A DNA stretch of 63,467 nt, filler included, from Hyphochytrium catenoides (GCA_900088475.1; 9 parts of 9 records of this genome joined end to end with filler, not necessarily neighbours in it), one strand, 5' to 3'. Shown: positions 1,264 through 45,436, numbered from the whole stretch's first letter. Program-made: numbers and translations. The notes: generated from the letters alone by a model not told the origin.

Positions 1264-1326
<63 letters not shown>

Positions 1327-2711: not shown

Positions 2712-2811
2712 NNNNNNNNNNNNNNNNNNNNNNNNNNNNNNNNNNNNNNNNNNNNTTAATTAATTAANNNNNNNNNNNNNNNNNNNNNNNNNNNNNNNNN
2801 NNNNNNNNNNN
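2712..2811. other. Artificial contig-joining spacer (N44-TTAATTAATTAA-N44); also at 16330-16429, 46823-46922, 48251-48350, 49933-50032, 51113-51212, 52455-52554, 54035-54134
   Basis: An identical 100-nt block with a central 12-mer (stops in all six frames) occurs eight times, and genes are cut at these points. Confidence 0.97.
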
Positions 2812-5032
2812 CGCAACCCGGTGGTTAGCAGCCGTCTGAGGAGATATACATATAACACATCGTCTGTCCTTTCTCTCCCTTAAGTCTCACTTTCTCTCTC
2901 CCTCGTCCATGTTTCTCGGTTCTCATCCTCTTTGTTAAAGGCTCAGAGCAACAGACAGGAAGTCCTTGTTCTTCTTCTTCGCACCACGCCTCGTCCATAT
3001 GACCTCTTATTTGATCTACAATTTCTCTTTCCTGTGCTCCCTGTCCGCTTCCCATTGCCTCTGCGATTCCCTTCATCAAGAAAGAAAAGTACCTGGAGCA
3101 GGAGCCTTTATCGTGTCCAAGAGCTTGCAGCCACAGGTGCCGAAGATGATTGCTGCAAGTTCAGCACCACAACTCCTACCACTGCTACATAGTCGTGAGA
3201 CTCACTCTTCACAGTAAGGAGAGAGGGAGAGAGGGAGAGAGAGACCGCGGCTGTTCTTCTCTCGTCTCTTTCATTCTTCTTTCTTTCTCCGTATGCTCAC
3301 ACGTCTATGAAAGATGGAGAAAAGAAGAGGAAAAGAAAGAGATAGTAGAAGAGAAGATGAAAGAAGGAGAAGAAAGCGACGAACGGACAGGAAGGGGAGC
3401 GAAGGATTTGGACTCTCCAAATTCTGAACTGTCTCCTCTTCTCTAACATCATCACTAGTAGAACAAGAAGGAAGATTCATAGGGCATTTCCCCGCTTCAA
3501 TAGAGTTGGAGAAGAATGAAGAAACAGTGCTCGCTCTCTCTGTCTCTCTCTCTCTCTCTCCTCTCTGCTCTTCCTCCTGATAATAAAACCTATCAGCCCG
3601 CCGTTAGTAAAGCACAACGATAGAAGAGTCCAAGGCTCAACACGCTTAAGAAGAAGCACCAAAGCAACAACGGGTCATCGCCGCAGCATTGAAGCTTTCT
3701 TCCGTGTGCTATCCATACATTATATTATGCAAAGTTTGTTAACAGAAGAGGAAGATAGAACGGAGGAAATGCCAATTATTATTACTAGGTAGGTCAGCAG
3801 AAAGACTTCTCTTCTTCTCTCTTTCTCTCTTTTCATGTTTCTTCTTTTCATCCTATCTTCAGCGCTACTATGTAAACTCTTGCCGAGCAAGCAGAGAAGA
3901 AAGAAGGAAGAAACAGCAACAAAAAAAAGCAACTTAGTTAAAGCCAACATGCGTGTTCGCTTTTTGTACTCTCTCTTTTCTGTTGTTCGTCTTCTTCCCT
4001 TTCGTGCTCAGCAAATTGGTATATAAACTTTTGCAGAGGAAGAAACAAGAAAAGCCGACATTTGCAACTTTTCATTCTTCAAAAAAGGCTTCTCTTCTTC
4101 TTCTTCTTCTTCTTCTTCTTCTTCTTCTTCTTCGTTTTTTTCTTCTTCCCTCAGTTCTCCTCCTTCGCCATCTCCATCATTCCATCATCAACATTTCTTT
4201 TTTGTTGAAGCAACAACAGATCGCCGGCTAATGGGTGACAGAAAGGACCCTCTTTTTTCCTTCTTCATCATCATCAACGCTTTCTTTCCCCTTTTTTATA
4301 ATTTCTTCTTTTCTCCGCTTATCATCCGGACAGCAAGTAGTACTTCTTGGGGGGTTGCACTATGAGCCGTCTTCTCTCTCTTTTCTTCCTTCTTTCCCGT
4401 CCTCCTCCGTCTGACTTTCTTTCTCCCTCTCTCTCTCTCGCTTTGCCTTTCTTCCCCTCCTTTTCTGCTTATCTCTCTCGTCCTTTGTTATTCTCTCTCT
4501 CTCTCTCTCTTTCTCTTCTCTCTCTCTCTCTCTCCCCCTCTCCCTCTTACTCGCTCGACTCTCTCTCTCCCTCTCTCCGCCCCTTTCTCTCTCTTCCTCT
4601 CTTCTTCCTCTCTCTTGGTCAATGTTCCACTTTCCCTATGTGATCTCCAAAGTAATATCTCAAAACCGACAAATAATTCATTAATGATGCCCGCACCTCA
4701 GGTTAATGAGAGCTGTAGCGCTTCCTTCCCAATTAAAAGGCGGTTTAGGAATCTTTATCTTCGTTACAACACAACGCTCCAAACCCCTGTTTTGCCCCCT
4801 TTACGGTTGAGGTGTCATATATATCAGAGTAAAAGCGGCCAAGGGAATAAATTTTCTATGGATCTTCGCGTTTTGGACGCCACTTTATCTCTTTTTACGT
4901 CTAGAGAGTTGAGAGAATGTACTGCCTCAGATCTTTGATGGGTAATAAATGCCCTACTAGGAACTGCCTACTGTAAACAGTCATGAGGCATGTTGCTTGG
5001 AGATATCGTTTCCTCAAGGCCCCCCTCAGATT

Positions 5033-17151: not shown

Positions 17152-19790
17152 TTAAAAGTCAAAGTCAGTGTCATCGAAGTTGTCTTCATCCTCATCGTCG
17201 TCCGTGATGTCATCCAGCCCATCCTGATGGGCCTCGACGAAGTCTACACGCCAGCGAAGAATGCCGCCGATACCGCCAAAGCCCTTGCAGAACTGAGAGC
17301 CCTCCTGACTCCTGTTCGTGACAAACTCTAAGGTTGTACCTAAAGGCGAAGAGAGAGAGAGAGAAAGAGAGAGAGAAGATACGATAATAGACTTAGAGGT
17401 CAGTAATCAGGGTGCAACTTAGCCAAAAAGGCAGACTCCATACGCAGAGGATAGGAATTGAAGAAGAGGAAGAATGACCGCTGATATCTGCTTGCATGGA
17501 GAACAGACCTGACGAAGCAAGAGCCAGCCAAGAAACTGACAAAAGTAGCTACGAACGGACTCACCATACTGCTTGTAATTATTGGCAAACCATTCCACCG
17601 CTGAGATCTTCTCGACAGTCTCTAAGTCAGTGCCAGACGCAGGATCCTGGAAGTTGGAAGTGATCTTCTCCTGCTCTGGGCTAAGGAAAATCACCTTTGT
17701 CTCTGCAAAAGCGAGCGAAAAGAGAAGAAGCGTCAGAAGTGCAATCAAGAGAGACGAGAAGTGACAATGAGGCACCAAAAGAGCGAATAGCCGAAAAGAC
17801 AGGGACAAAGAAAGCAGAAGAGAGAATCCTTACCGCCTGTAGAGTTGTTTCTTAGAGTGAATCTGTTCAGCGCTAGGTCTTCATAGACAATGAGGATCTC
17901 GACAGCTCCTAGATCCAGGGCGTGCAGCGTGTCTCGGATGCCGAAGCAGTACTTGCCTGAGTCCTGACTGATCTCGTCGAAGTAGCGGCCTAAGCGAGGA
18001 GAGCAGAGACGAACCTGTAAGTCAAAGATCAAAAGCGACTACGTACAGAACGACTTGAGTCGTGGAAGGTAGATAGAGAGCAAAAGAGAGAGAGACACAC
18101 ACAGAGAGAAAGGGCTCTAACCGGAGATAAAAGAGGTAGGACGTGAACGTGAGTACAGCAAAGTCGAAGGTAGTGCGAGACAGGGACTCAATGGACACCA
18201 AGAGAGACAGAGCTCCAAATGAGCGAGGGAAAGGGCAGAGAGAGAGAGGGAGAGAGAGAGTTTACCAATGAGCTTCTTCTCATGAATAAACTTGACGTTA
18301 GCGAGAGTCTCAGCAGCTAGCTCTATCGCCTGATTGAAGCCGTTCTCTCCTCCATAAGAAACGTCCACTGTCTTGATGACAACCTTAGCCAGACGCTGGT
18401 CAAACATGTCTACAGAGGAATCAACGACATAGAAGAGTTAACGGACAAGCCGGACGTCAGGAGACTGCCATATGGCCCAACCCAGGTGAACCTAAGAGTT
18501 GGGACAGCGTAGAGGCTAAGGAAAAAGCAACAAGAAGAGACACATCCAGGTAAGAGAGAGGTCACACCAGTCCTAGGCCATTCTACTGCCTCTTAATGGT
18601 ATTGTGAATGCTTCTCTTTTTTCTCTCTCTCTCTCTCTTCTGTCTCAACTACTTCTATGCTAGGTAGAGCATCTTCTTCTCGTCCTTTGTTATCTTTCGC
18701 CTTCCAAATTGTCAAACGCTGTTCCAGCCCTGGCGCTTGCCTCCTCTCTCTCTGCTCACCTGACTGCTGGAGCTCTGTCTTGAAGTCAGCCGAACCAGCC
18801 AGCACCAGCCCAGCAATATTGGGCCTGTCATTAGTGATGAAGAACTGCGTGGCCATCTCTGCCACCTTCCTCACGTAGTTATGTCTCTTCTCCATACGAA
18901 GACGGGCGAAACGAAGCGCAGACTGACCACCTCTGCCGTGTTTCTTGGGCAGATCAACGCTGAACTTGTGCAGAACCTCTCTGTTATTTCCTTGGAGGGT
19001 TCCATAGAGACAGCCATTACCATCCATCACGATAAAGCCAAATTTATCATCGTCCTCCAGAAGTTGGTTGAGGTCCTATAATGAGCGACAGAGAGAGAAA
19101 AACGAGAGAGAGAGAAGGATAAGAGAGAGAGAGAGAGAGAAAGATGAGAGAGAGACATAGGGAGAGAGAAAGAGTGAGACAAATAGTGGAGAGAAAAAGG
19201 GAAGAGCGCGGCGAGCGGATTAGAAGAAAAAAAAAGACGAAGGACAGGGGGAGAGAGAGAGAGAGAGCCAGAGAGGGAGAGAGGGGAGAGAGAGAGAAGA
19301 GGGAGACAAAGATCGCTGAGCTGATCAGTGCCAAAGCCAAAGAAAGGGGGTCCTATATCAAAAGCAGGAAGGACTGCCATGGCCACTTCCCCTGGACCCA
19401 TACCAACGAAGACCAGAGGATGAGAGGACTTCCAAGATCGTGAAGAAGAAAATGCCCTTCTATGCCCTTCTCTCTCTCCTCTCTCTTTTTCTCTCTGTTC
19501 TTACCTCAGTATGGAACTTGTTGTCACACATGTAGAGAGAGGTATTGATAGGCTTGAACGGCTCAAAGTCAATGTTCATCTTTCTCTCTTTCCCTTCATC
19601 CGTCACCACTGTCCCGCAGTAGAGCACCAGGCCGTTGGGAGGAACTTTGCTATAGAGTTTCAGGCGCTGCTGGGTGGAGGTGATGGCGCCCAAGACCGAG
19701 AGACGATTGACTCGCGATTTGATGTTCGAGGCCGTGCCATACTCTTCCGTTAGCATCTTGTTTACCCGTGAGATCTGACCGGAGAGAGAG

Positions 19791-21541: not shown

Positions 21542-24500
21542 GAGCAATCTCTGAGTCGAGTACAAGGGAAATGCCCAAGAGTGGAGGCCCAAGGCAACCT
21601 AAGTTCGGCTATGCGAACATTTGGCAGTGCTGTTGCCGATCTTTTGTTCGGCATGTAGGAAGGTGTCTGGCGCTTGAAGCACTGCAAAAAGCTTCATCCG
21701 TTGCAGAGATCCATTCTAGAGATCAAGCTTCTCGAAGTTGGGCCTCCCGCCGAGGTGGTCACTTCCCAAAGGTTACTTCCCTCGTTTGTTGGTACCCTTC
21801 TACGGTGAAGCACTGTGAAGGACTCCTTTCGGCCTACTCTTAGAAGCGGTACCTGCAGACCTCAACCTAGGTGTTCTTGCTGATGGTGCAGCTACTGCTA
21901 CTGTTGCTCCTTTCCTGCTTGCTTCTGTCCTTCACACCTTGTCGCTTGATCATTGCTCTGCTGGGCCGGAACCCTTGCCGCTAGTAGCTAAGAATCTGGG
22001 AGGAGGACGGTAGCGTAGGAGTTGACTCGCCCCTAGTAGCTGAAATCTTTGACGAGTCCGTCAGTGGTGGTTGGTTAAGATTGAGCTCGGATCCTAATGA
22101 GTACTTACTAGGCTCAATGAAAGTAAGCACCCTTTTCATTTCATCTCATTTGCTTGCTTTATCGAGAGTACCGCCACCTTCACTGACAATCTTGTTCTCT
22201 CGAGCCTCTTGTTCAAACAATAGTGGCAAGACAGGACGCGAGATATAACTTTCCCTGTCATTGTCGGCCCAAGCTACCAACAAGCACTTGCTTGTTAGGT
22301 AGATGATGAGGCCAGCTAGGATGCTTATGAGATCACTGCTGACATAGAAAAAGAACGGGAACATGCAAGAGTGTCAAACTCAGAAGTTCAATTTTTCTGG
22401 TTATATGGTGCTAGCAGCACCCGTGTTGAATCGTGAATGCTCCTCCGACGCCACGGATCGTCTTCCTCTGCTTGCGGCGGGAGGAGGAGGGTGCAAGGGC
22501 GACTCGTCCATCCCTGCTAAAGGTGAGGGAGGCCTTCTCTTAGAAGCCGCTTCCTATTCCTTCATCAGCTTCGTAATCTCCTGCCGTATCTCGGTCTCTG
22601 AAGGAAGATTAAACCTGTCAGGGTGGCGTTGGCGCAGAACTTCTAACATTCGGCCCGGGCCTCTCTTCAGTGACTTGTCTCTCTCTCCCAGCTCGAAGAG
22701 CTCTCGAATCTCATCCTTGAAGCTTCCAATATACTTACGACCATACATCTGACCCTTGGGAGGTCTTCTAGCCCATCCACCTTTGATCTCGTAGGGAATC
22801 TGATAGCCATCATCAGGATCAGGTACCTCCAGCAGGGCGATGTTATCTGTAGCCTCAATGACTCCCACCTCTCCTCTTCCATGAAGATGTAGGGCTCTCC
22901 GGATGGCATATGAGACAACATCCCTTGAAGCTAAACCATTCAGATTTTTAGGTTCAGGTCGAGGTCCATGACGCCACTGGCGCTGTCTGCGGCGGAGCTG
23001 TCCTTCGGTCGTGATCTCAACACCGGTGATTGGGCCAGTGCTTAGAGGAGTCCCAACGGTCTCAGTTTGTACCTCCTCAAAGTCATCATCTTCACTTCCT
23101 TCTAGCTCTTCTTCTGCCTCGCTGACCTCGTCGAGGCTGGCTATTACGCTATCTTCCTCAGCGTCATATTCCTCTTCTGAATCATCGTTGGCTTGTTCAT
23201 TTGGTGTGGGGCCAGAAGTCATGAGAACTTGACCTTCAGAGGGCTTGCAACTGATCGTGATGCCTTCCCCTATGCCAGAATATTCAAAGGCGGTAAGGGT
23301 GAAGTTGGGGCAGTCTTTATAGCTTAGTACTCCCGTCGTTGAGGACTGACATCGGCTCCTGCCACCCTCGCCTTCTCCTACATGTCGGAAGAAGATTATG
23401 TCATTAGCCCGTTTGACGTGGCGCTCAAACTGCTTCTCAAGAGAATAGACCTCCTTTACAAAGCCGCCTAGTCGTTCGCGATCGTGCTCAATTAGCTCTA
23501 CAACGCAGTTAGGTAATCCACCGTGATGTTTTAGGCCTGCCACTGCCTGACTTGGAGTCACACAGTTATGTCCCTCCTTTAGATATGACTTCAGGACCTC
23601 CATGGAACGAGCAAAGTGAGCGTCCAAAGCCGACTTTCCATCCTGTGTCTCCGTATGAATGAATCGTGTGATCTCCACGCCATGCCCCGCTGCCAAGTAA
23701 GGAAGAACTAGTGGTAGGAGGGCGTTCTGATAACACGTTGCATTATCAGACTGGATCACTAATCTCTTTATGTCCGGGAGATCCTTGCGTAGCCTCACAA
23801 GTACCGCCTCTGTCATAGAGATAACTGACTCTCTGTCTTGTTTGTTGTCTCCGTCAGATAGATGATCAAAGTACATCTTGTTTTCACGGACCGTGGCACA
23901 CTGCACTCCATTGTCATCATCATAGGTGCAGTACTGCACCATCACGCCGTGCCAACTTATTCCCCTCTTTCCATTGTGGTCCACGGGTTTCTCCCGAAAG
24001 TACATGGGCTCAAGGTTCATCTTGAAATCCATCACCACTAGAGCCTGATCGGAGCCCTTATTGTCCAAGCAGTACTTTCGCATGCCCTCCACGATCTGGC
24101 TGATGGCCCTTTGCTGGTTTATGACCCTGATTCGGTGCCCAATGAAGAGCTTGGCCTTGAAGCAACAATCATCAATCACTTCTGTGGCTGAGGGTGGCGC
24201 TCCGGCAGCGTCCACCGTTTGCTTGACCCTCGTGTAGAAGAAAAACATTCGCTTACACTCTTGGCAAAAAGTACGACTGCCGCCTTGGATAGAGTGCGTA
24301 TTATCTAGCCCGTAAGCGATGTCGTGCAAACAGCAATCAACGTCAGCCTCTCTGACCTTCCTGTCAAATCCGTATTCCATGTATGCACGGACAACCTCCA
24401 TCTCTCTTATCAAGCTATCCTTGGTAGCTCCCGAGAGTCTCACAGTCTGTAGTATCTGCGTTATGAGTTCAAAGGTGTCATTCACAAGAAAGCCCGTGAC

Positions 24501-25950
24501 ATGGTCTGCTGCCCTCCTCACTTGTGCATCTCCTGCCGTGAGTGTGCTAACTATTCTGAAAAAGGTGGCTCTCGAGAGTGGGCTTTCCTCTGGCATGGTG
24601 GCCGCTACCAGCTCTACGTAAGCTGCATACATGTGCGTCCTTGCCTGCTTCCTCATGATAGAGGGAAAGATCTCCGTACGGCCATCAAGCTTTAGCTTCT
24701 TTGTTCCCCACGAAAGGAAAGAGACATTGGTTGGAGAGAGTATGAAAGAGACAGCATGATCCACAACTGCTGGCTGAAACCTTTTCACGGTCCGAGCGGC
24801 ACTCGCGATGTTTCCTCCCTCACTGAGAGTCAGAAAGTCTGCGCGCCCAGCGGCAAAAGAAGTAAAGGGCATGGCAAAGCCTGGCACAGTGTCTTTCAGC
24901 TCCTGTAAGCGAGAGTGCCGAGCATATTGGCAAATGAACGCCCGCATGACTCGTTTTTCTACGGACCCTTTCTTCGCCTTGAAGTAGCGTTCCGCTAGGC
25001 CTATCAAAAGGTCACTCGGGCAAAAGGGGTTACCCCTGCCAGATGCATGGCCTCCTTCTTCGACCCGATGACGATGAAGGAAGGCGTTAAAGGAAGCCTC
25101 TCCAGCTTCCTCCGACCACCCACAGAAGACCTTACATATGTGAAGGAAAATTGCCTTATAGGTGTTAAGGACATTTCTTAGAGCTTGCCCTTCGAGGGAC
25201 TGCCAAGCGGCAGGATCGGTCCTGCTAGCCAAAGGCGGCATATGAGCGTACGTGTATTTGACTGCATGTCCCATGCCAAGAGCCCTCAAAAGGTCTGCAG
25301 GGGTACGCAAAGCCTCCTGCTGAGGAAGGCCTGCAAAGTCGTCGCAGTCGGAAGGTGCTGCTGCGGCAGTTATCTCCCTCCTCGAGAAGCTTGTCGCCGA
25401 TGCCACCCTCTCCGGATGCTGGCCCTTTCTTGGTGGATGAGGAGCTTTCGGCGGCGACTCTGCAAGCATGCCTTGCCTATAAGTACATGTACGCCGTTTC
25501 TTACTCCGAGAAGAACTGCTGAGGCTATCTGCTGGCTGACGTCCACGCTTTCGGTTCAGCTTTGTTGCGATTGGTATGCCGTCATGGTCACAACCACACC
25601 GGCTGCACTGAAAGCAGGTGCCACATCTGGCTACTTTACATTTACAAGCGAGTTCAGGAAGGTTGCCAGCCATGGCAGCAAGTGGAGCAGGGCGGTCCTG
25701 CAAGGAATCAGTCGCATGCTCTCAACCTTAGCGCGAGCGATGCCGAATATGCGAAGCTCGATAGCAGCAGCGGCAGAGTCTCTGCAATAGATCGCTGTTT
25801 CCTCCTGCTGCCTATCGGAAGGCTGCTACAAGGTCCACACAGAGAAGATAGAAACCACTCTTTGCGTGTGGAAAGCCCTAGAAAGACGCGGAATAGAGAG
25901 ACATTGTGGTACACCTACACATTTCCCTCTACTTGACTCAGAGATTGCTT
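21542..25950 (-). mobile_element. Sola-superfamily (Sola3-like) DNA transposon, 4409 bp, with ~32-bp terminal inverted repeats
   Basis: Left end GAGCAATCTCTGAGTCGAGTACAAGGGAAATG (21542-21573) matches the reverse complement of the right end, AAGCAATCTCTGAGTCAAGTAGAGGGAAATG (25920-25950). Flanks TTTT / GTTT may be an imperfect 4-bp TSD. The interior lacks microsatellites and holds one large transposase-like ORF. Confidence 0.85.
22554..25673 (-). CDS. Sola-type DDD transposase (~1039 aa from first ATG)
   Basis: Intronless ORF with an N-terminal Cys/His cluster (CKC..CGTCFQCSRCGCDH). Putative catalytic blocks are VVMDFKMNLEPMYFREK..GKRGISWHG, IQSDNATCYQN and ETQDGKSALDAHF, followed by a C-terminal GWARRP..MYG helical region. 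Family assignment is from motif recall, not a database search. Confidence 0.8.
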   Translation of the reverse strand: MAGNLPELACKCKVARCGTCFQCSRCGCDHDGIPIATKLNRKRGRQPADSLSSSSRSKKRRTCTYRQGMLAESPPKAPHPPRKGQHPERVASATSFSRREITAAAAPSDCDDFAGLPQQEALRTPADLLRALGMGHAVKYTYAHMPPLASRTDPAAWQSLEGQALRNVLNTYKAIFLHICKVFCGWSEEAGEASFNAFLHRHRVEEGGHASGRGNPFCPSDLLIGLAERYFKAKKGSVEKRVMRAFICQYARHSRLQELKDTVPGFAMPFTSFAAGRADFLTLSEGGNIASAARTVKRFQPAVVDHAVSFILSPTNVSFLSWGTKKLKLDGRTEIFPSIMRKQARTHMYAAYVELVAATMPEESPLSRATFFRIVSTLTAGDAQVRRAADHVTGFLVNDTFELITQILQTVRLSGATKDSLIREMEVVRAYMEYGFDRKVREADVDCCLHDIAYGLDNTHSIQGGSRTFCQECKRMFFFYTRVKQTVDAAGAPPSATEVIDDCCFKAKLFIGHRIRVINQQRAISQIVEGMRKYCLDNKGSDQALVVMDFKMNLEPMYFREKPVDHNGKRGISWHGVMVQYCTYDDDNGVQCATVRENKMYFDHLSDGDNKQDRESVISMTEAVLVRLRKDLPDIKRLVIQSDNATCYQNALLPLVLPYLAAGHGVEITRFIHTETQDGKSALDAHFARSMEVLKSYLKEGHNCVTPSQAVAGLKHHGGLPNCVVELIEHDRERLGGFVKEVYSLEKQFERHVKRANDIIFFRHVGEGEGGRSRCQSSTTGVLSYKDCPNFTLTAFEYSGIGEGITISCKPSEGQVLMTSGPTPNEQANDDSEEEYDAEEDSVIASLDEVSEAEEELEGSEDDDFEEVQTETVGTPLSTGPITGVEITTEGQLRRRQRQWRHGPRPEPKNLNGLASRDVVSYAIRRALHLHGRGEVGVIEATDNIALLEVPDPDDGYQIPYEIKGGWARRPPKGQMYGRKYIGSFKDEIRELFELGERDKSLKRGPGRMLEVLRQRHPDRFNLPSETEIRQEITKLMKE

Positions 25951-27001: not shown

Positions 27002-30000
27002 CTACGGTGACACCTCTCCTCTCTCTCTGGCGGCATCTCCGTCTTCCTGCTGCAGAGGAGGGCCAGTTAATTCCAAGCCTGGTAGACTGTACCTCTCTCC
27101 TCTTTCCTTCCCGTGTCCTTGCCTCTTCTCCTTTCCTGGCGGTGTCTGCTGTACCTTCAGATCCCTAGCTGAGGTTGTCCCTTCTCCTCTTTCTCTGCTT
27201 ATCCTCCTTCTGACATAACGCACGCCATAGCCGAACAGAGAGAGCACCACGATACCGCCTAAGGCACATCCAAGGAGAAGCAGGAGCGTGGCAAAACTCA
27301 TCTTGCTGTTCTCCTCTCTCTCTCCTGGAGAAGGAGAAGGAGAGACAGCACCACCACTTCCACTGCCTGTCCCACCTAAGGTCTCTCTCTCTTCTCCCTG
27401 TCGGACGGAGAGAATGGCGAACGAGCTGGAACTATTGATAATGCCATAGTAAACCATAGCTTCCGCGATGGCAGAAGTAGCGTCAGAGGCGTTCTCTTCC
27501 AGGAAAGAGAAGACAGATTCCTGCTGCTTGCTGTTCTCCCCATAGAATTCCCAGGTAATGCGCGTTGGAGAGAAAGAGAGAGAGGAAGAATCTCTCTCTT
27601 CACCCTCTTCCCCTACTGGCTTGTGCTCCACCTGCCGAACAGGCAACAGCATCCTCCTTCCCATCTGCCTGCTGGAAGACAGATCACGGTGAAGAGAGCG
27701 TGTCTCTTCCATAGAAGAAACAGCAGTGACATTGAACTGTTTTCGAGAGAAAGAGAAGCCCGAAGCTAAGAACGCTGACCACAAGCTCTGACGGAGGGTT
27801 GAGAGAGAGGAGGAACTGGAGAGAGATTCGATGGAGACAGAGAGAGTGCTATTGACACTCACGATATGGAGTCGAGAGAGAGGTGCTGTCTCTTCTTCGT
27901 TGGTCTCTCTTCTTTGCCACTGCGCGGTCATCACACAGCGTCGAAGATCATTGTTCCAGATCCAAGGGAGAAGGACTCTCTCTCCTCCCACGAAGTGATT
28001 GTATGGGCTTCCTTCTATCTTCTCACTGGAAGGGTTGAAGGTAAGATTGTAAGGAAAGAAGTATTGACAGCGGTCTCCAGCTTCTCTCCCGCTCTCTTTC
28101 TCTTCGCCTCTCTCTATCCAACCGTCACCCCGAGGGCTAGTCACAGAGCTAACAAGGGCGCTAGCAAGAGAAGAGACGAGAGCCGTGCTTCTCTTCTCCT
28201 CTGGAGAAAGTGAGAGAGAAAAGGCTGACTCTGCGCTTTGGATCTCTACAAAGGGAGGAGGAACGCACTCTGGCTCTTCAATGGTTCCTCTTCTCTCTGT
28301 CAGAGGATCAAGAAGGTAAATGACGGGGAAAGAACCTTTCTCTCTGACGCTCTGGGTGCTATGAGACCAACAAGGACGACCTTCATGGAGAGGATCCCCT
28401 TCCGGAGAGAGAAGGTCGTGAGAGAGAAGAACAACGAAAACGACGGAGTCGTTCTGAAGAGAGAGAGAAGAGGAGAGAAGGGAGTCATTAGACGACAGTG
28501 CAAGAGCGACAACCTCGTCTGGGTTGATAGTAGAACCATTTGCATAGCCCAGAGAAAGAGACGAGACAAGTTCAACCTCTCCTGAGACTCTCTCTCCCTT
28601 GCCATCTTCATAGGAGGAGATGGACGCCCACCACGATGTCTCCTTCAGTCCAGTGACAAACCTCTCTACTTTCTCTCTTGTCTGTCTCCCTTGGCCTCCG
28701 ACAGTCTCTCCCTCTCCTCCCCAATCTCCATACCAAAGCAGGACCACTCCTGTCTTCTCCTTCAGGAGCTCTCCTCCACGGTAGATCAGGGGAGGAAAGG
28801 AGGAAGGCTTTGTCTCTAATCCTTCAATGGCACACATCTTGTCCTTCGGGTTCCAGAGGCTCTGTATTAGGAACCTTCTCTCTCCTACACGGACATTGTA
28901 GGGAGCTCTCTCTCTCTCCGTATAGTAGATCCTTTGGTAGTTTCCCTGGCATAGATCTCCCGCTTCTTCTCTCTCAGGAGAGAGCCATCCGGCTCCAAGA
29001 GGATCGCTGACTAACTCTAAGAGTTCGTGGGCCAAGGTGTCCACTATCGCGTCCGCAGATATATCTCCGTTGATTGACTGTGCGCTAGCAAGAGCGTAGA
29101 GGGGATTGAGACAGGGAGAGGCGCAAGAAAGAGAGAGAGGATCATTGAGAAGCGCATATGGAACTGGAAGAGCGAGAGAGGCAGACGGTAGGGAGTAGAG
29201 AAAGGAGGTGTGATAACCGCAATAGGAGCTACACAGCGCTCCAGTCCCATAGGATTCCATTATATCATCGGAGAGGATGACAATGTAGGCCACGTTATGG
29301 AGAGAAAAGAGAGAGAGAGAAGAAGAGACAGAGTCAAGCACTCTCTTCACAATGAGAGACGAATCCTTTACAGAGGCACCGAGAGAGTACTTGTCAAAGT
29401 AGCTCCTGCCAAACAAGAGAGAGTCCGTCACTCTCTTTCCTCTGCTGTCTTGATACAGATTCATGGTGTTCCACCACGAAGAAGAGCTCAGATCCCTAAC
29501 AAAGCCTTCTACGATCGACACGGTCTGACTGTCTCTCTCTCTGTCCCAGTCTCCGTACCAAATAAGGTTGACCGTCACCTTCCCCTCTTCTCCTCTATCT
29601 CCTTGTTCTCCTGTCATTACCCTGCCATTGTGGAGGTTCAGCTCTTTCTCACTGTAGGCGGAAGAGAGAGAAGAAGAGAGACAGCGTTGCTTCCTCTCAC
29701 TCCACGTCTGCTCTAGCAAAAAATAGTTCCCATCCATCTCTACATTCGCTATGTACTGCGAGTGAAGAGGAAAGAACCGCCAGGCACATCGATCCATCAC
29801 TCCTTCTCTCTCTGCTTCCCGTCCTTCTACTCTCCAGCCATTTCCATAGGGATTCGTGGCTAGATTGAGAAGAGAATGACCAAGATGAGTCGTCATCCCA
29901 AGCCCTTGGATAAGGTCATAGTCGCTCGTTGTCTCCGCTAACGAGTAATAGACGTTAAGGGCAGCTGGGAGACAGAGTGAGGGGCAGTTCAATGGATTCC

Positions 30001-30935
30001 CAACAAAAAGATAGGGAACTTCCCTGCCAGCAGAGGGAGAGACGTAGCTGTCGTGGTAAGAGCAGTAATCCTTGCACATTTCCTTATCTGTTCTTCTCTT
30101 TTCGGAAATCTTCCCCGCTGTAAAGATAGCGAAGGCCGTGCGAGCTGAGGAAGAAAGGTTTCTTCCTGCAGTGGCTCTTTCTATCAAGGAGGGGACGTCT
30201 CCTGGAGAGAGCGAGAGGTTGCTCGTACTAAGGAAAAGACTCTTGTCGTGGGCGATCTTCGGCAGAGAGTACTCGCTTCTAACCTCGTACCACCAGTCAG
30301 AAGAAGAGACAGAGAGGAGGAAGGCTTCTATCGCTGAGAGAGAGAGTCCATTGTTCCTCCAGTCTCCGTAGAAAATAGGATACACGGTGACTGTCTTATT
30401 AGCTAGCGGGTTGGAGCCCCCAAAGGAGAGCTTGGGAACGAGAGAGGGAGATCTAATCTTCATCTGTGCAGGCTCTTCCATCCCCACTCTGCAACCCTAC
30501 GAAGAAAGAAGGAAGAAAGCAGACACTGAGCGCTCTAAGAGGTTGATGGGATAAGCTAAAAGGATTGGCTAGAGATAAACAGACAAGATAAGCAGCAGGG
30601 CTCTGCACTGCAGAAATACACGGAATGGAAGCTATAGAATTTGTCCCAGTGACACGTGCTACAGCGCTAGCGGCGTTCTGCACAGTCGAACCGAGCGCAA
30701 TGACAGAAGATAGGTAAGAGATCATAAGAATAGAATGTGGGACGGAGCAAGAGCATGGGGAGACAGGTAGCGCTTAAGAGCAGGGAGAAGCAGATAGGAG
30801 GGAAGTGGCACGAAAGAAAGCAGAGAACGACAAGGGAAGACAGACAAACGGACAGGCAGACAGAGAGGTAGGATGGAAGAGACAAAGCAGCCAAGGGCAC
30901 CCTACGGATTTTACGGAGGGGAGTTGGGAAAGAGA

Positions 30936-30968
<33 letters not shown>

Positions 30969-31010
30969 AAAAAAAGAGAGAGAAAGAGAGAAGAGAGAGA
31001 NNNNNNNNNN

Positions 31011-31045
<35 letters not shown>

Positions 31046-33560
31046 CAGAGAAGAGATTAGAGAAAGGTGTACCTGCGATAGGATGTCCCAGTTCTTCTGT
31101 ATGAGAAAACGATGGTGCTGGTAGACGACATTATAGTGCTTTCCCTCCGCAGTGGTGGAGATAGGAGAGAACTGCCAAGCACACTTGTCAGCGTTTTCAT
31201 AGCCGTCAAGAGCAATCCAAGCGTAGCCCATCGGGTCCGTTAGAGCCTCTTGGGAGTTACAGAGACGGTAAAAGAGAGATTTAGCGATAGCAAAGAGTGT
31301 ACGGGACCGAGGGAGAGAGCATAGATGGAGGACACATGATGAAGAGTAGATCTCGAGGAGAAGACACGCGCCATTTCTCCTGCAATAGGCCCGGGCGCAG
31401 CTCATGAGGGAACACATGGGGAAAATAACAATATGAATGCCTCAACACGCAATGAGACAGAAAGACAGCGACCAAGCAAGCCCGGTACGCTTAGAGTTTA
31501 GGTACACACGGAAGGTGAAGAGAAAGACGTTGGACGAGGAGAAGGAGAAGGAGCCATATAAATGCAGGGCTTACCTGTTATTTCATGAGCCACCACGCTC
31601 GCCATCGAGTCCGCTACTAGTCCGTTTGGAGGCGAATAAGAGCTCGGTATGGTGCATACCTCGTGAGGGTCACACTGAAAGGGATGACCAATGAACGCAT
31701 AAGGAACGTAGGCGCTGCCACCCACTCTGTCTTGAAGGTACACGGCCGAATGATAACCGCAGTATTGCTGGCAAAAGCCTTCAGCACCTCCTGATGAAGA
31801 GAGAGAAGGAGAGAGTGTCTGTGTGAGAGAGACAGAGAGAAAGATGAAAGCGAATGAGAGAGAGATGACAGAAAGGGAGAGGAACAGGGTGAAAGAGAAA
31901 GTCAAAGAGTGAAAGAGAGACTCAGCATGCCGTTAGTGAGATGAGAGGACTTTTATCGCGATACTTATTATACATCGACAGCAGGAAGAGGAAGAGGACT
32001 GGGACCCTACTCCCTACGCTTTCCCTCCGAGAACAGGGAGGCAAGGGGATCAGGGAAAGGCAACAGAAAGGCAGAAGAAGGAAGAGAACAGGGCCATGAC
32101 CGAGCAAAGGTGGAGAAAGGGCTACGAACGAATGGGAGCAATAAGTATCGCGTTACCTACCTTCACTGATGTCCTCCGAGGTCATGACGATGTAAAGCAT
32201 GTGCGAAGAAGGATCCTCTCCTACTTCCTCTATCGCCCTGTGCACAATCTCCTCTACTCCGCCATCCAAGCTCTTCCCTAAGAAAGCATCATAATAGATG
32301 GACTTTATAAACCTTAGGTTATCGTTCACATGGTACCCGTCCCGGTCGTGATAATGGTTCGTGATGTTCCACCAGGCCGTGGAGCCGATGACGGCCGAAA
32401 GGTCCTCAATGGTCCGGACAACAGAGCCATTAACGGGCCACGAGCCGTACCATACCAGGTAGATGTCCGTCGCGGGCTGCGTCATCATCAGTTCTCCATA
32501 GAACTCCATGTTTAATGTGCAGGAGAGGACCGCTGCGTCTTGTGACGTACAAGTGGTAGAGGGTTGAGAAAGAGAGCAGCCAGTCAGAGAGCTTTCAGAG
32601 CCCGTACAGCTGAGAGAATACTGCGGCGCGGGGATAGAGGATATGGTCCGTGTGCTATAGAATGACGAGGCTTTGTAGACCGCTGTAGCTTTATGATAGC
32701 CTAAGGTCTTGCAAGCCACGTTGGCCGTCGTCAGGGTCATACTAAAGGAAGAGGAAGCGAGCTTGGTGAAGACGGATAAACGAGGTAACCTAGTGAACGG
32801 ACAGGGGCTGAAGGAGAGAAGAGAGAAGCAACGCAGTTGAACAGCGTTTGAAAACAGAGGTACAGCCCTCAGGCGTAACTCAAAAGGAAAGAATCTTCCC
32901 TCAGATTGTCGTCAATCGCGCTGTTCTCATACGCCGCCAAACGACGTGGAGGAAGGCAAGCTAAAGATGCGGACGGAGTTTTCAACAAGGAGAGGGGATC
33001 AATCGAGGTCCACGCAGGGGAAGAAAGCTACCCGCAAAGGAGATTGATATATATAAAGAGGGGAAAAGAGGAAAGATGGAAGCTTGCTCTCACCTGGTAG
33101 CACAAAGAGGCTGCTGTTGTCCTTTATAGCACACCGATAAGAGTCCCGCATAGTCCCCACCAAAGGAGTCATCGACGCTGAAGGCTGGGGCCATACTGGT
33201 TGTGCAAGCGGGAAAAGATGGAAGAAGGCGCCGCTTTCGCTCCCCATAATTTATGCTTGCAATGTTTGGCAGAAGAGTGACCTCATTGTCGGTTCTGGAA
33301 ATGTTGGACGCCCATCCCTTCTTGAGCTCGTCAGCCCCGGAGTCGAGGTTAACGTACTTGGGACGGCTTCTCAGTGGTACAGCTCGCTTGTGGACTGCTT
33401 TGTAACCTCCGCCTCTTCCTCTTCTTTCACTTTGGAGATGTCGATGGTGCTGGACTGGATTGCGTCGCACTGAGACCTTCCCAGAGGAGAGTTCCAACGT
33501 GAGGATAAGACAAAGGCAAAGAACTGCCCATGCGGCAGACTGAGGACGTTGGCGCTTCAT
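27002..33560 (-). CDS. Type I membrane protein: signal peptide + SRCR + 4x Phi-1/EXORDIUM domains + juxtamembrane module + TM + short tail (~1644 aa, 5 exons)
   Basis: Exons 33560-33094, 32741-32161, 31790-31575, 31248-31073 and 30496-27002 total 4935 nt, all phase-compatible. SRCR pattern GLLSVCYKG..LCA..ANVACKTLGY..LSCTGSESSLTGC..DAAVLSC. Four copies of the pattern (W/F)YG(S/D)W..WW..C.(Y/S)H..P.G.(G/A)W..D.C..N..W..C. TM FATLLLLLGCALGGIVVLSLFGYGV followed by RRR. Confidence 0.85.
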
Positions 33561-36500
33561 GTCCTTATTACTCTGCAATAGCAACTTCGGGCTTTCTATC
33601 CTTAGAAGATCAATAGCAAACACTATCTGATCTTCATCTGCAGAAGCTCCATAAATAAAGCCTTGACAGAGATCAGACAGCAATCCAAAGTGAGGGCCTT
33701 GCCATCTGCAGTCATCGCGGGGTGTCCATGTGAACGATCGAGCCGATGGAGCTTGCTCTAGAGCTCTCATCGCGGCGATTCGAGTGAGGTCGTGGGTGAG
33801 CCTACGCAATGTGTTTGCATGTCAACGTAGTGCGTCTAGCACTGAAGGCGTGGAGAGTGAGTTTGACGGGACTGCTGGTTGTTTGATGGTCGATCCGAAC
33901 GGAGGGGAAAGCTCAGTCATCAAACTTGCTTGTAACCTTTCAACCAAAATAGCCGCTAACCGACTAATGGAAGGACATATGGAATCTGGTGTATTGGATC
34001 GCTGAGATAACCGTTGTTATTGAGAATGTTACTCGATAAGGTCAGAAGGTGAGGATGCGATGTAACGGATTTTGAGAGAGGCGCCTCAGTCAGTTAGCAA
34101 CGGGGCTGAGAGACAGAAGGGAAGCAATGAATCAGAGCCTTGCTGTTTCTCTCTCTCTCTCTCGCCCTCTCTCTCTCTCTTTCTTTCTTTCTCTCTCTCT
34201 CTTGTTGTCTTTCCTGCTTCTTCGTAATGTCTTTCTCGCTTGGCGATCAACCTTCGAAGAACATTTAATTTGTACGCCGGTGATAGGGGGACAGTAACTC
34301 AGATTGCGTCTCCAGCTAACCACTAAAGTTGCTCAGTGAGAGCTATGTTCTATGGAGGCAATAACATAGAGCACTTTACTTATTAAGTAGAGCTTGTTGA
34401 GGTCGCAATACGCTCGAGAGAGCATCAGCAATATGACATTGCAGAGCTTTGTCTTGTCAATCGCTCAGTATTCAGTTGGACCTTGTTGGGGTGGTAAAGC
34501 CCTTCAGAGAGCACAGGACAAGTTACTCAATGCAGAGCTATCTCTACTAGACAGCTCATCAGTTAGAGCTCAGTTCAGAGCTGTATTCGCTTAGACAGTT
34601 CATTAGATAGAGTTCATTAGGTGGAGCCTGCTGTTGCCTACGTAGAGCCGTCACAAGTATCCATTGTCTCAGATTGACCTTTAATCCATTGTTCCCGACC
34701 ATGATAGTATTCAGTGAGGCGCTGAGATGTCCTTAATAGAGTCAATCTTCACTATGTCAAACTGAAGGGCTTAGTAGACCATCAGACCTCATCTGGTCCC
34801 AACGCCAGTCAGCATGTCGGTAGTGGCACTTTTTCCGACGACAAGAACAGAAAGGCAATAAAGTCCTGATGTCTTCAAGCGCGCTTTTCCGACAAGAGAA
34901 CCAAGCAAACGACGTGGCTGGTAGGAGTAGGAGAGAACTGATATGGGAACAAGAGGTTAACCCAGAAGAGGAACAGACAACAAGGCTCGCCTCTGAATCT
35001 TGCTGACCACCTGATAAGGGTTATTATACACAGGCCAAACACCTGAAAAGATGGGATGTAATCTGGATCGTTTTCGTAAGGGACCCTATAACCTAAAGCC
35101 CTAGCCAGCTCATAAAAGAAACAACCTGGTCACGTGATCCTGTCGTCATACATAACGACGGTGTCAACTGGCATTTTTAACGATGGACACGGGACCAGGC
35201 ACGACAAAACGTGCAAGCATCATCAGTTACAGAGGGCAATGAAACTCATGTCCTTATTAGTGCTATCGGCCGGTGGCCCAGAGACTCGAGGCAAGCTAGT
35301 CTTGGAGAGAGGCTTCTTTGGCCGCTTTATGTCAGCAACGTTATCTACCTTGTTACCGGATGGCCAGATAAGGCTCTTACAATATACGTAGGACGAGGAA
35401 AGGGGCCAAACGATATGCTAAGTAAGCGTACAATGACTCTCGTGCTGTGACTAGGGGCTCCTTCCTGTTCCCTCCTATGGCTGCATCGTATCAGCACTTT
35501 TCCTTCTTCCGTGACCTGCAATTTTATTAGCCTCCGCGTCGACCCTTGTAGACCACCTACCACTTCTGTCATTTGTCATTTCTAGTCCGATGAGACAAGG
35601 ACCCATCTAAATCCAGCAGCTCATGGACCATTGTTGGCTTCTTCACTGTTGTTCGGACATACCGATGAAGATTTACGTCCCACTTTGCTGAGCTGATGAT
35701 CACCTGACGCTCCTGCCTGAGAAACTAACCGAGTTCTCTCAAGACCGACTTTTGATAAGGTCCTCAGCCTGCTGCTATTGGCGCCGCTTTCTCAGGTTTC
35801 CTCCCCCGGACACTGGGCAAAAGAGTTTAGCTCTGCATGACACGTAAACTAAGATGAAAAGTAGCTTTTCGAGCAAGAGGAATGACCCGTCACCACTGCC
35901 CTTTACTACCTCCCTGCATCGGTGGACGGTGAGGCTTTTCTCTCTAGCACAGTCGAACGAATAGTGAGCGTCGTAACACCAACAGAAACTAGATTTCTAC
36001 ACGACGCTCACAGACACCAGGATGCACCCTGGTCCCGCTTCCCCGTTCCTTTCTTATGTCCTGACATTATTCTTGTCATTATTCAGTCCGGATCTGCTGC
36101 ATCTATGGATGACGCATCACAAGGAGCTCCTTTTCAATGTTGCGACTAGGTCATGTGTCATGTATGTCGCCCTAAAGGACGGCTTGTAGCTTGTAATGAG
36201 GTAACTCCTACAGCGTCCCCGGTGCTGGTAGGCTGTCTCTGCTACGTGTTTCTAACTTCCGCCTTCCCAGTGTCCAGAGCGCACTAGGAATGCCTACACT
36301 AATTAATAAGACTTATTTCTACCGTTTTGGCTTATATGGCGAGGAAGCACCTACTCTTTCAGATAAGACTGGATTCTGCACAATTGATAATGATCTATGG
36401 ACTCCCCAAAGGCACAAGGCTTTTCCAACTGAAGAACATCTTAGTCTTTCGGCTAGCTTCCATGGACGACTGCAGGTAGTTCTATCGTGGTTATTGACGA

Positions 36501-38071: not shown

Positions 38072-39250
38072 ATGGAAGTAAGCCCCATGGCAAAAACTTG
38101 CCTTCCCGCTTCATTTGTACGGGGACGGTCGTTCACCCGGCAGGACGGGATGGTGCTTCGGACGGGCTCTTATAACGAACTCGTGGAAGCGCAGAACTCC
38201 AAAGCGCTTCGCCACAAGAGGAGATCTAACCAGGCTCACAGCGAGAGGTGCATGGAGCTCACAGAGCCCGTGAATCTGTCGGTGTTGAACAGCGCCACCT
38301 ACAGAGCAACGAGCAAGCAGACAAGGCGGCAGAAGCTCCTTGCTCAGTCTTGTTATTGGAGCTTCAACGCGAACAGTATCTGCTTCTGTGATGCTGTTTT
38401 CCTTGTGACAAGCATCTTAGAGACCTACACGATTGTCCAAAACAAGCACATGCCGCTCACCTTCTTAAGAGACCTGGCCACCGACATTTTAGAGAGCTAT
38501 CAACCGGTGAAGTATCACAACTGGATCCATGCGGTAGACGTCTTCGTACGGACTCACGCAGTCATGTCCAGCAATTCAACATCGTCAGCGCTGACTGATG
38601 TTGAAAAGTTCGCCCTGGCAGTCGCTGCTTTGGTGCACGATGTAGACCATCCTGGACATGATAATCTCTATGAGCGAAGGACATCATCTTCACGCTCTAT
38701 GGAGTGCAACGGCCATTCCGTGCTAGAGCGCCATCATTTATCCTTTGGCATGTCAATACTACGCAGACATGGCCTGGCGGCGTTTTTCACAGAGTCAGAG
38801 TACGAAGTGTTCACCGATATATTGCGACACGGCATCTTATGCACGGATATGGCACATCACGGCTGTGTGCTCAGTGCCATTCAGCTAGAGCCCTCTCAGA
38901 CATGCAGTACCAAAGATCTCGCGGGTGCAATTCTACATGCAGCAGACATTGGTGCACAATGTCTTCCCACCGAGGTGGCGCGGGTCTTTGAACAACGGGT
39001 CTTAGATGAGTTTAGAGCTCAATCTGCCAAGGAAATGATGCTTGGCCTGGCTCCGTCTATGGTGTACTTGGACGACCAAGAGAAGACTCTAAAGTCTCAA
39101 TTATCTTTTATTAACCTCTACGTCTTGCCCATCTGGGATGCTCTCCAGCGCCTGGTAGGAGGTATGGAACAGCCACTCGAGAACCTAAGAGCCAATGCAA
39201 AGCTTGCCGAGCAGGCGATAATGGGCTTGGACTCAGAAGGACAAGAGTAA
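38072..39250 (+). CDS. Class I 3',5'-cyclic nucleotide phosphodiesterase, catalytic domain only; intronless
   Basis: PDEase_I motifs YHNWIHAVDV, HDVDHPGHDN, VLERHH, TDMAHH, HAADIG and the conserved Gln in SQLSFI. Confidence 0.93.
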   Translation: MEVSPMAKTCLPASFVRGRSFTRQDGMVLRTGSYNELVEAQNSKALRHKRRSNQAHSERCMELTEPVNLSVLNSATYRATSKQTRRQKLLAQSCYWSFNANSICFCDAVFLVTSILETYTIVQNKHMPLTFLRDLATDILESYQPVKYHNWIHAVDVFVRTHAVMSSNSTSSALTDVEKFALAVAALVHDVDHPGHDNLYERRTSSSRSMECNGHSVLERHHLSFGMSILRRHGLAAFFTESEYEVFTDILRHGILCTDMAHHGCVLSAIQLEPSQTCSTKDLAGAILHAADIGAQCLPTEVARVFEQRVLDEFRAQSAKEMMLGLAPSMVYLDDQEKTLKSQLSFINLYVLPIWDALQRLVGGMEQPLENLRANAKLAEQAIMGLDSEGQE

Positions 39251-43658: not shown

Positions 43659-43715
43659 NNNNNNNNNNNNNNNNNNNNNNNNNNNNNNNNNNNNNNNNNN
43701 NNNNNNNNNNNNNNN

Positions 43716-43825
43716 TTTCTCTCTCTCCCCACACATACGCATACATCTAGATCCTTTTTCTCTCTCCCCACACATACGCATACATCTAGATCCTTTCTCT
43801 CTCTCCCCACACATACGCATACATC
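43716..43825. repeat. 39-bp tandem repeat, ~3 copies, abutting an N gap
   Basis: Unit TTTCTCTCTCTCCCCACACATACGCATACATCTAGATCC is repeated. Confidence 0.9.
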
Positions 43826-44177: not shown

Positions 44178-45116
44178 CTATTCTCCCTTCTTAGCCTTCT
44201 TCGGAGCGCGGTAGACGCCTACGACAACAGCGTGGTCTCTCTCATACGGCTCCAGAGTGAGCTGCTCCTGGGGCTTGAACTGCTCTTGCTGGAGCTTCTT
44301 CACCTCTCTGGCAAAGACAGCCTGAAAAGTAAGTGAGAGAGAGAGAGGCAGAGGTCAATGGCCAGAAGCGAGACAAAGGAGAGACTAGAGAGAGAAAGAT
44401 TTTACCTCTGGTGCAGCAGTAGAGTCAATGCAGCTAGCCTTGATGGAGACGACAAAGTGTCCTCCGTTCCTCAAGAAATAGTGGGAGTTCAGGGCCACAA
44501 TACGCGCCTGATCAGGCTGAGCCACATCTGCGAAGACAGTGTCTACCATAGGAACCAGCATTCTATACTTTAGAGGATGGCGCGCGTCCTCAATGATCGG
44601 GATCACGTTCGTCCGCGTCTTTGCCATGTTAATAAGATCTCTGCCAGATCTGTGAGAGAACTCTACGGCGTAGACGGCACCGCTGGGGCCCACGATGTCA
44701 GAGACGTGAGAGACTGTGGTGCCTGAAGCTCCTCCAAGGTAGAGAACCTTGGAGCCTGGAGCGATGTAGATGTTGTCCACACCGCCAAGGATTGCTGCTG
44801 CAAGCTTCGATCTGAAAGGGTTCCACACGCGGTATTCAAGCTTCTGCGTGCCCTCGCCGTTAGGGAGAGGCGTCTCAACTGCAATTCTCTTCTCTCCGTA
44901 CACACTGTGGCCTGGAGTGGAGTTCAAAGTGACGAGCGCGTCCTCCTTGCCGCGGGCAATGAAGACTCCCTCGTGTCTGTGAGGAACAATGACCACCTTG
45001 GCGCCTCCCTTCATGCCACTGTACGAAGACTGCGTTAGAGTGAGGGCAACATGAAGAGGGAGAGAGAGAGAGAGAGACAAGAGCGCAATAGAGAGCAGAC
45101 CCAGAAATAGAGAGAA

Positions 45117-45170
<54 letters not shown>

Positions 45171-45436
45171 GATCAAGAGATATGGACATCACGACGGATC
45201 GAGACGACAGGGTCAGGGCAAGATTGACGCAGCGTCTCAGGCACTCACCCTCGTCCTCCGCCTCTTCCTCCTCCTCTTCCGCCGGCGCCTCTCCCGCCTC
45301 CTCTTCCGCCGCCTCTTCCACCACCACGTCCGCCACCCCGTCCACCAGCGCCACGTCCACCTCCGCGGCCACCAGGAGGTCCACGGCCGCCACGGCCTCC
45401 TCTATCGCCTCTGCCGCCTCTTCCTCTGCCAGACAT
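44178..45436 (-). CDS. FBL: Fibrillarin (rRNA 2'-O-methyltransferase, Nop1)
   Basis: Exons 45436-45249 (GAR/RGG domain), 45018-44406 and 44321-44178. Motifs [41 protein letters not shown] and LEPYERDHA; TAG stop. Confidence 0.98.

Follow-up and report, generated by a model that had tools for sequence, protein, structure and literature searches.

An SRCR-tipped, membrane-anchored protein with four Phi_1/EXORDIUM repeats predicted from the genome of Hyphochytrium catenoides

A 63,467-nucleotide stretch of DNA from Hyphochytrium catenoides (GCA_900088475.1; nine parts of nine records of this genome joined end to end with filler and not necessarily neighbours in it; hereafter the window) most likely contains, at positions 27002-33560 on the minus strand, a five-exon gene for a 1644-residue type I membrane protein that carries an SRCR domain and four Phi_1 domains (PF04674), the family of the plant EXORDIUM/PHI-1 proteins. 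From the N-terminus, the order of the parts is a signal peptide, a basic region, the SRCR domain, the four Phi_1 repeats, a stalk, one transmembrane helix and a tail. As judged from the sequence, the domains of the protein are known ones and it is their combination that is new, as it was met in no other sequence searched; the lineage is an under-sampled one. The reading that we favour, with a probability of roughly 0.55, is that of a surface-anchored ectoprotein in which the Phi_1 repeats would act as metal-dependent hydrolase-like or binding domains, repeats 1 and 3 being competent and repeats 2 and 4 degenerate, with the SRCR domain serving in targeting.

Gene model and protein layout

The exons of the predicted gene, and the intron that separates the last two, are as follows.

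33560-33094, minus: exon 1, with the ATG at 33560, the signal peptide, the basic region and the putative start of SRCR; the donor CAG/GTGAGA follows in phase 2
32741-32161, minus: exon 2, the remainder of SRCR and the N-terminal 40% of Phi_1 repeat 1 (Pfam and family profile)
31790-31575, minus: exon 3, the middle of repeat 1 (YCGYH ... VAHEIT)
31248-31073, minus: exon 4, the C-terminal part of repeat 1 (ALTDP ... ENADKCAW ... FLIQKNW)
31072-30497, minus: intron 4, GT..AG and CT-rich, containing an assembly gap at 31001-31010
30496-27002, minus: exon 5, which completes repeat 1 with a G and a C and goes on to encode repeats 2-4, the stalk, the transmembrane helix and the tail; stop codon at 27002-27004

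An earlier reading made from the DNA alone (the sequence-only reading) had spliced five open reading frame (ORF) fragments into a protein of about 1644 residues, and the fragments are found where it placed them. When joined by script, the five exons amount to 4935 nucleotides, or 1644 codons, with zero internal stops and with compatible phases. All four introns are of the GT..AG type, with lengths of 352, 370, 326 and 576 nucleotides; the donors of introns 2-4 are AAG/GTAGGT, CAG/GTAAGC and CAG/GTACAC, and the acceptor ends of introns 1-4 are TTTAG, ATCAG, CCAAG and CGTAG. The joined sequence was used for frame, length, hydrophobicity, motif counts and the composite alignment row of repeat 1; the exons were joined only in these local scripts, and the searches were run with single exons or with parts of exon 5.

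Exons 2-4 share repeat 1 between them, and the coordinates along the Phi_1 profile run on from one exon to the next. Exon 2 matches positions 9-122 of the Pfam profile (28.5 bits, against a cut-off of 25) and exon 3 positions 123-199 (20 bits, as a fragment). With a hidden Markov model (HMM) built from 82 family sequences, exons 2, 3 and 4 match positions 47-182, 184-244 and 248-300 (E 7e-27, 2e-18 and 6e-23, respectively); the matches are ordered and do not overlap, and the HMM positions absent between them coincide with split codons. Intron 3 splits the codon g/ag, and junction 3 restores the family-conserved Glu of HExxE in repeat 1. Junction 4 restores the terminal conserved Cys of the repeat, eight residues after the conserved Trp (W+8), a distance that is also found in repeats 2, 3 and 4. 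Junction 1 rests on the frame, the splice signals and a fit by eye, because the share of SRCR in exon 1 is too short to score by itself. The match to SRCR (PF00530) is confined to exon 2 (32519-32737), where it takes in positions 28-99 of the 100 in the profile, with an E value of 2.7e-9 and a score of 37.7 bits (cut-off, 26.1). Searched alone, the last part of exon 1 has no Pfam match, but by eye its sequence GLLSVCYKGQQQPLC fits the start of an SRCR domain, and profile positions 1-27 would lie there.

The assembly gap in intron 4 is located 63 nucleotides downstream of the donor and 504 nucleotides upstream of the acceptor. A (CT)n run starts about 35 nucleotides past the donor and resumes beyond the gap; the gap falls within this microsatellite and is therefore intronic, so that the coding sequence is uninterrupted. 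A hidden exon at the gap is unlikely, because exon 4 reaches HMM position 300 and exon 5 starts with Gly-Cys at the W+8 spacing.

The splicing of the five exons is what we infer from sequence, a point that counts against our reading of the protein as a whole and in favour of there being two genes. Exons 1-4 would then encode a secreted protein with SRCR and Phi_1, exon 4 reading on into a Ser/Leu tail encoded by the CT repeat up to a stop at 30911, and the large ORF would be a separate protein with three Phi_1 domains and a transmembrane helix. The frame of exon 4 is indeed open across the CT repeat and the gap up to 30911, and the gap is of unknown length. Nevertheless, we consider two genes improbable: exon 5 has no signal peptide, though it encodes disulfide-type domains and a C-terminal transmembrane helix, and its first Met is only 12 residues ahead of a Cys-rich domain of extracellular type. 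Moreover, repeat 1 would lose the conserved final Cys that exon 5 supplies, and the donor and acceptor of intron 4 are canonical and in phase. At the 5' end of the gene, the frame of exon 1 is also open upstream (33561-33809, minus), with an in-frame ATG at 33770, 210 nucleotides before the ATG chosen here; if used, it would put the hydrophobic segment about 75 residues into the protein, as a recessed signal or a signal anchor.

The segments of the predicted protein outside the Phi_1 repeats are the following.

33480-33560, minus: signal-peptide-like N-terminus, with a basic n-region and the hydrophobic core AAWAVLCLCLILTL (hydrophobicity scan)
33222-33479, minus: basic region, residues 28-113, free of Cys and ending KRR-LL (RRLL at residue 110)
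32519-33221, minus: SRCR domain, predicted to span intron 1, with eight Cys within residues 119-230
27302-27907, minus: stalk of about 200 residues, containing RRML at residue 1427
27221-27301, minus: transmembrane helix MSFATLLLLLGCALGGIVVLSLFGYGV, mean Kyte-Doolittle value 2.53 over 19 residues
27005-27220, minus: basic cytoplasmic tail of about 72 residues

The hydrophobicity scan detects only two strongly hydrophobic segments, at residues 6-31 (signal-peptide-like) and 1544-1573 (transmembrane). The layout anticipated by the sequence-only reading (signal peptide, basic region with RRLL, SRCR, four Phi_1 domains, RRML, a single transmembrane segment and a short tail) is borne out, except that the tail has about 72 residues and not about 60; the single SRCR and four Phi_1 domains that it expected are matched by Pfam and by the family HMM in exons 2-5. 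The SRCR domain is the only one detected in the genome. Residues 28-113 have zero family matches and the stalk matches zero Pfam families; a model of the stalk made with AlphaFold2 (AF2) without an alignment has a predicted local distance difference test (pLDDT) value of 47 and is unusable.

The motif RR[LM]L occurs twice, ahead of SRCR (residue 110) and in the stalk (residue 1427). Two or more copies were found in 43 of 20,000 shuffled sequences, a frequency that has to be read with the fact, unfavourable to the proposal that follows, that the pattern was defined after being seen. One may speculate that the two copies are dibasic cleavage sites, for maturation and for shedding.

The type I topology, the large ectodomain and the presence of a cytoplasmic tail are what a signalling receptor would have, the binding of a ligand by the ectodomain being relayed through the transmembrane helix to the tail. 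However, the tail, of some 72 residues, is basic and has no recognisable domain or Pfam family, and the stalk, the transmembrane helix and the tail have no paralogue within the H. catenoides genome. We regard a signalling receptor as very unlikely, and the proposal of the sequence-only reading that the protein is a receptor or sensor finds no support in such a tail.

The Phi_1 repeats and their predicted fold

The four repeats, three of them encoded in full by exon 5 (Pfam Phi_1 in three stretches, E 8.7e-59, 199.6 bits), differ in the state of their conserved motifs.

30491-32488, minus: repeat 1, residues 241-482, with introns 2-4 inside; YCGYH, AHEITEALTDP, ENADKC and six Cys intact
29666-30442, minus: repeat 2, residues 499-757; six Cys kept, motif degenerate, GHSLLNLATNP (H-S-N-N)
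28820-29665, minus: repeat 3, residues 758-1039; motifs intact, AHELLELVSDP, six Cys
27908-28813, minus: repeat 4, residues 1042-1343; motif gone, ASALVSSVTSP (S-A-S-S), one Cys pair gone

Identity among the four is 22-31%, and it is repeat 3 that is nearest to the paralogues in the same genome (37% identity). The series YCGxH ... AHExxExxTDP ... ExxDxC is kept in repeats 1 and 3 but not in repeats 2 and 4. In the alignment of 82 family sequences, the nearly invariant residues are, with the numbering of repeat 3, C137, C141, H144, C173, C177, H205, E206, E209, D213, P214, W219, E226, D229, C231 and C270. Among the best matches to the family, the H-E-E-D set is intact in 130 of 157 domains, the exceptions being concentrated in multi-repeat proteins. 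The two Cys missing from repeat 4 are lost together and are therefore suggested to be disulfide partners; three disulfides are probable for Phi_1 family-wide, as far as can be told from the sequences.

With the 82-sequence alignment, AF2 gave a confident model of repeat 3 (pLDDT 91.7, predicted template-modelling score 0.91), to which bacterial Phi_1 clusters of the ESM Atlas align with a template-modelling score of 0.87. The elements of the model follow one another as strand, helix, strand, helix, strand, hairpin, two strands and a long helix (194-212), an order that fits the N-terminal subdomain of the metzincins together with the active-site helix. In the model, H205, E206 and E209 are found in the last turns of helix 194-212 and D213-P214 directly after it, and the conserved H-E-x-x-E-x-x-x-D is positioned on this helix like the zinc-binding helix of metzincins. 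When the model was compared with known structures by Foldseek, zero matches were found at E<=0.001, but nearly all of the best rows were ADAM17, ADAM10, ADAMTS4/5, archaemetzincin or a snake-venom proteinase; the top structural rows, with borderline scores, include ADAM22, ADAM17, ADAM10, ADAM8 and ADAMTS-1/5. The check by AlphaFold and Foldseek that the sequence-only reading had suggested for the repeats thus produced a confident model of repeat 3 and best rows of metzincin type, but no match at that threshold. His 405 of ADAM17 and His 410 of ADAMTS-5, which bind zinc, fall at about the same fractional position of the aligned ranges, which is a lead and not a residue-level alignment.

On balance, the model inclines us to a zincin-like fold and site for Phi_1. 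Several observations weigh against it. The structural scores are within a range that, by the tool's own account, is often reached by models that have no genuine counterpart, and the proximity of the conserved residues to one another, like the pairing of the disulfides, is deduced. A comparison by hhalign of the Phi_1 alignment with 29 bacterial Reprolysin_4 domains gave a probability of 1.4%, which is not significant; the aligned stretch, AHExxE over AHExxH, has 9 columns only and is trivially short. The Reprolysin_4 control domains all carry HExxHxxGxxH, and the Met is invariant in their alignment. The family consensus of Phi_1, AHELxExxTDP, does not conform to HEXXHXXGXXH/D, a Glu being in place of the second His; the candidate for the third ligand is at +8, against +10 in metzincins, and no Met is present among the invariant or nearly invariant columns of the 82 Phi_1 sequences that could correspond to a Met-turn. 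To the same side belong the weak matches of 5 of the 82 members to microbial transglutaminase (PF09017; best E 8e-4), a link that we rejected, as no structural row agrees with it. The zinc motif, the Met-turn and the profile comparison rule out Phi_1 as a member of the metzincins proper. No sequence match to the Phi_1 family was found in the PDB at E up to 10.

The comparison with the ADAM/adamalysin metzincins extends to the layout of the protein. Like them, the predicted product is a type I membrane protein with a pro-like region that ends in a dibasic sequence, an extracellular domain whose predicted alpha/beta fold may resemble theirs, and H-E-x-x-[H/E] conserved on the equivalent helix. 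Unlike them, it lacks HEXXHXXGXXH, the Met-turn, a disintegrin domain and EGF, and the resemblance is one of layout, and possibly of fold, but not of membership. A bolder proposal, which we put forward only tentatively, is that the Phi_1/EXORDIUM proteins are divergent zincin-like metallohydrolases that use H-E-x-x-E-x-x-x-D, and that the gene studied here would code for an ADAM-like ectoenzyme built independently in the hyphochytrid, in which active and pseudo-enzyme domains alternate and are aimed by SRCR.

Relatives and neighbouring loci

The family is large: a profile search gave 7931 Phi_1 representatives at E<=0.001, the best 150 of which were inspected. Named relatives include Closterium, Rumex, bdelloid rotifers, Dinobryon and bacterial metagenome-assembled genomes (MAGs). 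The highest identity of the repeats to any database member is about 34%, and no orthologue was therefore recognised among the matches inspected. No protein with both SRCR and Phi_1 was found among the best 150 of the 7931 representatives, in a word search or in two metagenome scans; the scans, with repeats 2-4 and with exon 2, gave no close relative. The word search with the whole of exon 5 gave nothing above threshold among 8000 candidates scored, possibly because of Ser/Leu-rich words of low complexity, and restricted to repeat 3 it gave one Closterium protein. No usable match to exon 5 was found in a feature search of the ESM Atlas, and an exact look-up of three proteins from this genome, L003 (see below) included, in a collection of 15 billion proteins found them absent.

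Tandem arrays of 2-3 Phi_1 repeats are known in Closterium, Dinobryon, Rumex and metagenomic eukaryotes: three repeats are present in P0008 and P0009, both from metagenomes, and two in Dinobryon P0130/P0290 and Rumex P0021, the arrays further including P0007 and Closterium P0003-P0005. As in the protein described here, the repeats are arranged head to tail and intact and degenerate motifs are mixed, but there are only two or three of them, SRCR and a transmembrane segment are missing from the sequences available, and the proteins are not orthologous to it (about 23% identity for P0007). The partner domains of Phi_1 elsewhere include CBM14, TIG, PKD, FG-GAP, Big_3_5, fn3, CBM_4_9 and Laminin_G_3; SRCR was never a partner among the long matches scanned with Pfam and the Atlas clusters. 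Thus, of the suggestion in the sequence-only reading that no SRCR-tipped protein with several EXORDIUM domains has been described, the part that concerns SRCR stands for the proteins inspected, whereas tandem Phi_1 arrays and fusions to binding modules are known. Animal and alveolate surface proteins likewise are multidomain ectoproteins with SRCR at the end away from the membrane; here there is one SRCR and it is fused to Phi_1, a pairing seen in no protein inspected. In our literature search, no paper linked EXORDIUM to zincins or SRCR to 'phosphate-induced protein 1', and there is no mention of Phi_1 or of SRCR in the H. catenoides genome paper or in its supplements (PMC5795050).

Three further Phi_1 genes, L001, L003 and L004, are present in the same genome; two of them are the following.

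L001 (G000:C2721:72089-75844), ORF 736-3708, minus: a single open frame, in which an N-terminal region is followed by a long mucin-like stretch rich in Ser/Thr, an intact Phi_1 and three PAN/Apple domains
L003 (G000:C4083), ORF 1270-2319, plus: 349 residues, with a signal-peptide-like start and a single Phi_1, the plant-like form

The paralogues are 29-37% identical to repeats 1 and 3 and have the motif intact, and L001 is also a fusion with adhesive modules. They differ from the gene studied here in having a single Phi_1 and neither SRCR nor a transmembrane segment, and L001 and L003 are each in one open frame, whereas repeat 1 is split. L003 is adjoined by an ORF that by eye is aquaporin-like. 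Plant EXORDIUM/PHI-1 proteins belong to the same family and are also extracellular, and repeats 1 and 3 keep all of the conserved Cys, His, Glu and Asp; however, the plant proteins are secreted, single-domain and of about 300 residues, while the protein described here has four tandem domains, two of them degenerate, in addition to SRCR, the stalk, the transmembrane helix and the tail.

In bacteria, Phi_1 occurs sporadically: of 301 genomes sampled from one phylum, 7 have it, as does a Paceibacteria MAG. The proteins (L019-L026) are single-domain, with 296-365 residues. The 8 bacterial loci have no neighbour family in common, and their context gives no functional hint. The phylogeny against homologues that the sequence-only reading had called for was built as a tree of 164 Phi_1 domains and is uninformative: repeats 1-4 join L001 and a Rumex protein with a support of 0.11, so that neither the order of the duplications nor a donor lineage can be read from it.

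Other loci of the window are listed below.

17419-19030, minus: exons of eRF1, with the GGQ motif in the ORF at 18593-19030
38072-39250, plus: catalytic domain of a cyclic-nucleotide phosphodiesterase (HDVDHPG)
44385-45176, minus: fibrillarin, with its best named matches in stramenopiles (80-85% identity)

At 22554-25703 (minus), 1.3 kb downstream of the gene, is an intronless ORF of 1049 residues without a Pfam family. It is multi-copy, with 16 places in the genome, several of them with stops or truncated, and by language-model features it is nearest to DUF7869 and DDE_Tnp_ISAZ013 clusters; to judge from the sequence, it probably encodes the transposase of a family of DNA transposons. CT/GA microsatellites fill introns throughout the window. 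The CT-rich introns had at first suggested an apicomplexan source, which we rejected in view of the stramenopile matches of fibrillarin and of the two species-specific rps3 primers for H. catenoides (PMC5795050); each primer matches the genome exactly once, and the two sites are on the same contig, face each other and are 185 bp apart. A second run of N, an assembly gap at about 43659-43716, appears as X in two overlapping ORFs and is flanked by short direct repeats.

Function and significance

Plant EXORDIUM/PHI-1 proteins affect growth and the responses to carbon and phosphate. In the surface-anchored ectoprotein that we favour, Phi_1 would be the working module, a metal-dependent hydrolase-like domain or a domain for metal-dependent binding, and the candidate charged set, family-wide, consists of H144, H205-E206-x-x-E209-x-x-x-D213, E226 and D229. 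Competence would be limited to repeats 1 and 3, with repeats 2 and 4 as degenerate pseudo-domains that serve to space the array or to hold substrate. Possibly, the SRCR tip brings a ligand or a surface to the Phi_1 repeats.

A non-catalytic surface adhesin or matrix protein is a possible, if not a probable, alternative. Phi_1 would then be a ligand-binding or structural domain, its conserved polar residues would serve to bind a ligand or an ion with a structural role, and the array would project SRCR from the membrane. According to the literature, Phi_1 proteins, EXO/PHI-1 among them, are not known to have any biochemical activity (PMC2661892), which weighs against a hydrolase and for an adhesin. 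Two of the four repeats lack the motif and yet have been retained in frame, and most repeats are degenerate in the other tandem arrays; moreover, the partners of Phi_1 in this genome, SRCR here and PAN in the paralogue, are adhesive modules, and the resemblance to metzincins is borderline. On the other hand, H, E, E and D are conserved in the large majority of domains, across plants, algae, rotifers and bacteria, a pattern that one would sooner expect of an active site or a metal site, and the bacterial members look like single catalytic modules with Ig-like or CBM modules attached. We favour an enzyme over a pure adhesin because Phi_1 travels with binding modules as secreted hydrolase domains do. 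Of the two functions that the sequence-only reading had offered, a sensor or a capture/processing enzyme, it is the enzyme that is better supported, by the metzincin-like model and the conserved H-E-E-D, and the sensor that is not.

The contrast between intact (1 and 3) and degenerate (2 and 4) repeats points to the residues that matter and, together with the metzincin-like model, sharpens a testable hypothesis for the whole Phi_1 family. If Phi_1 is indeed zincin-like, this would be the first biochemical function for the plant EXORDIUM proteins. As predicted, the gene presents the EXORDIUM domain as a repeated, membrane-anchored module combined with a pattern-binding SRCR in a distant eukaryote and, in Hyphochytrium, its product is a candidate surface factor for the attachment to, or the processing of, substrates.

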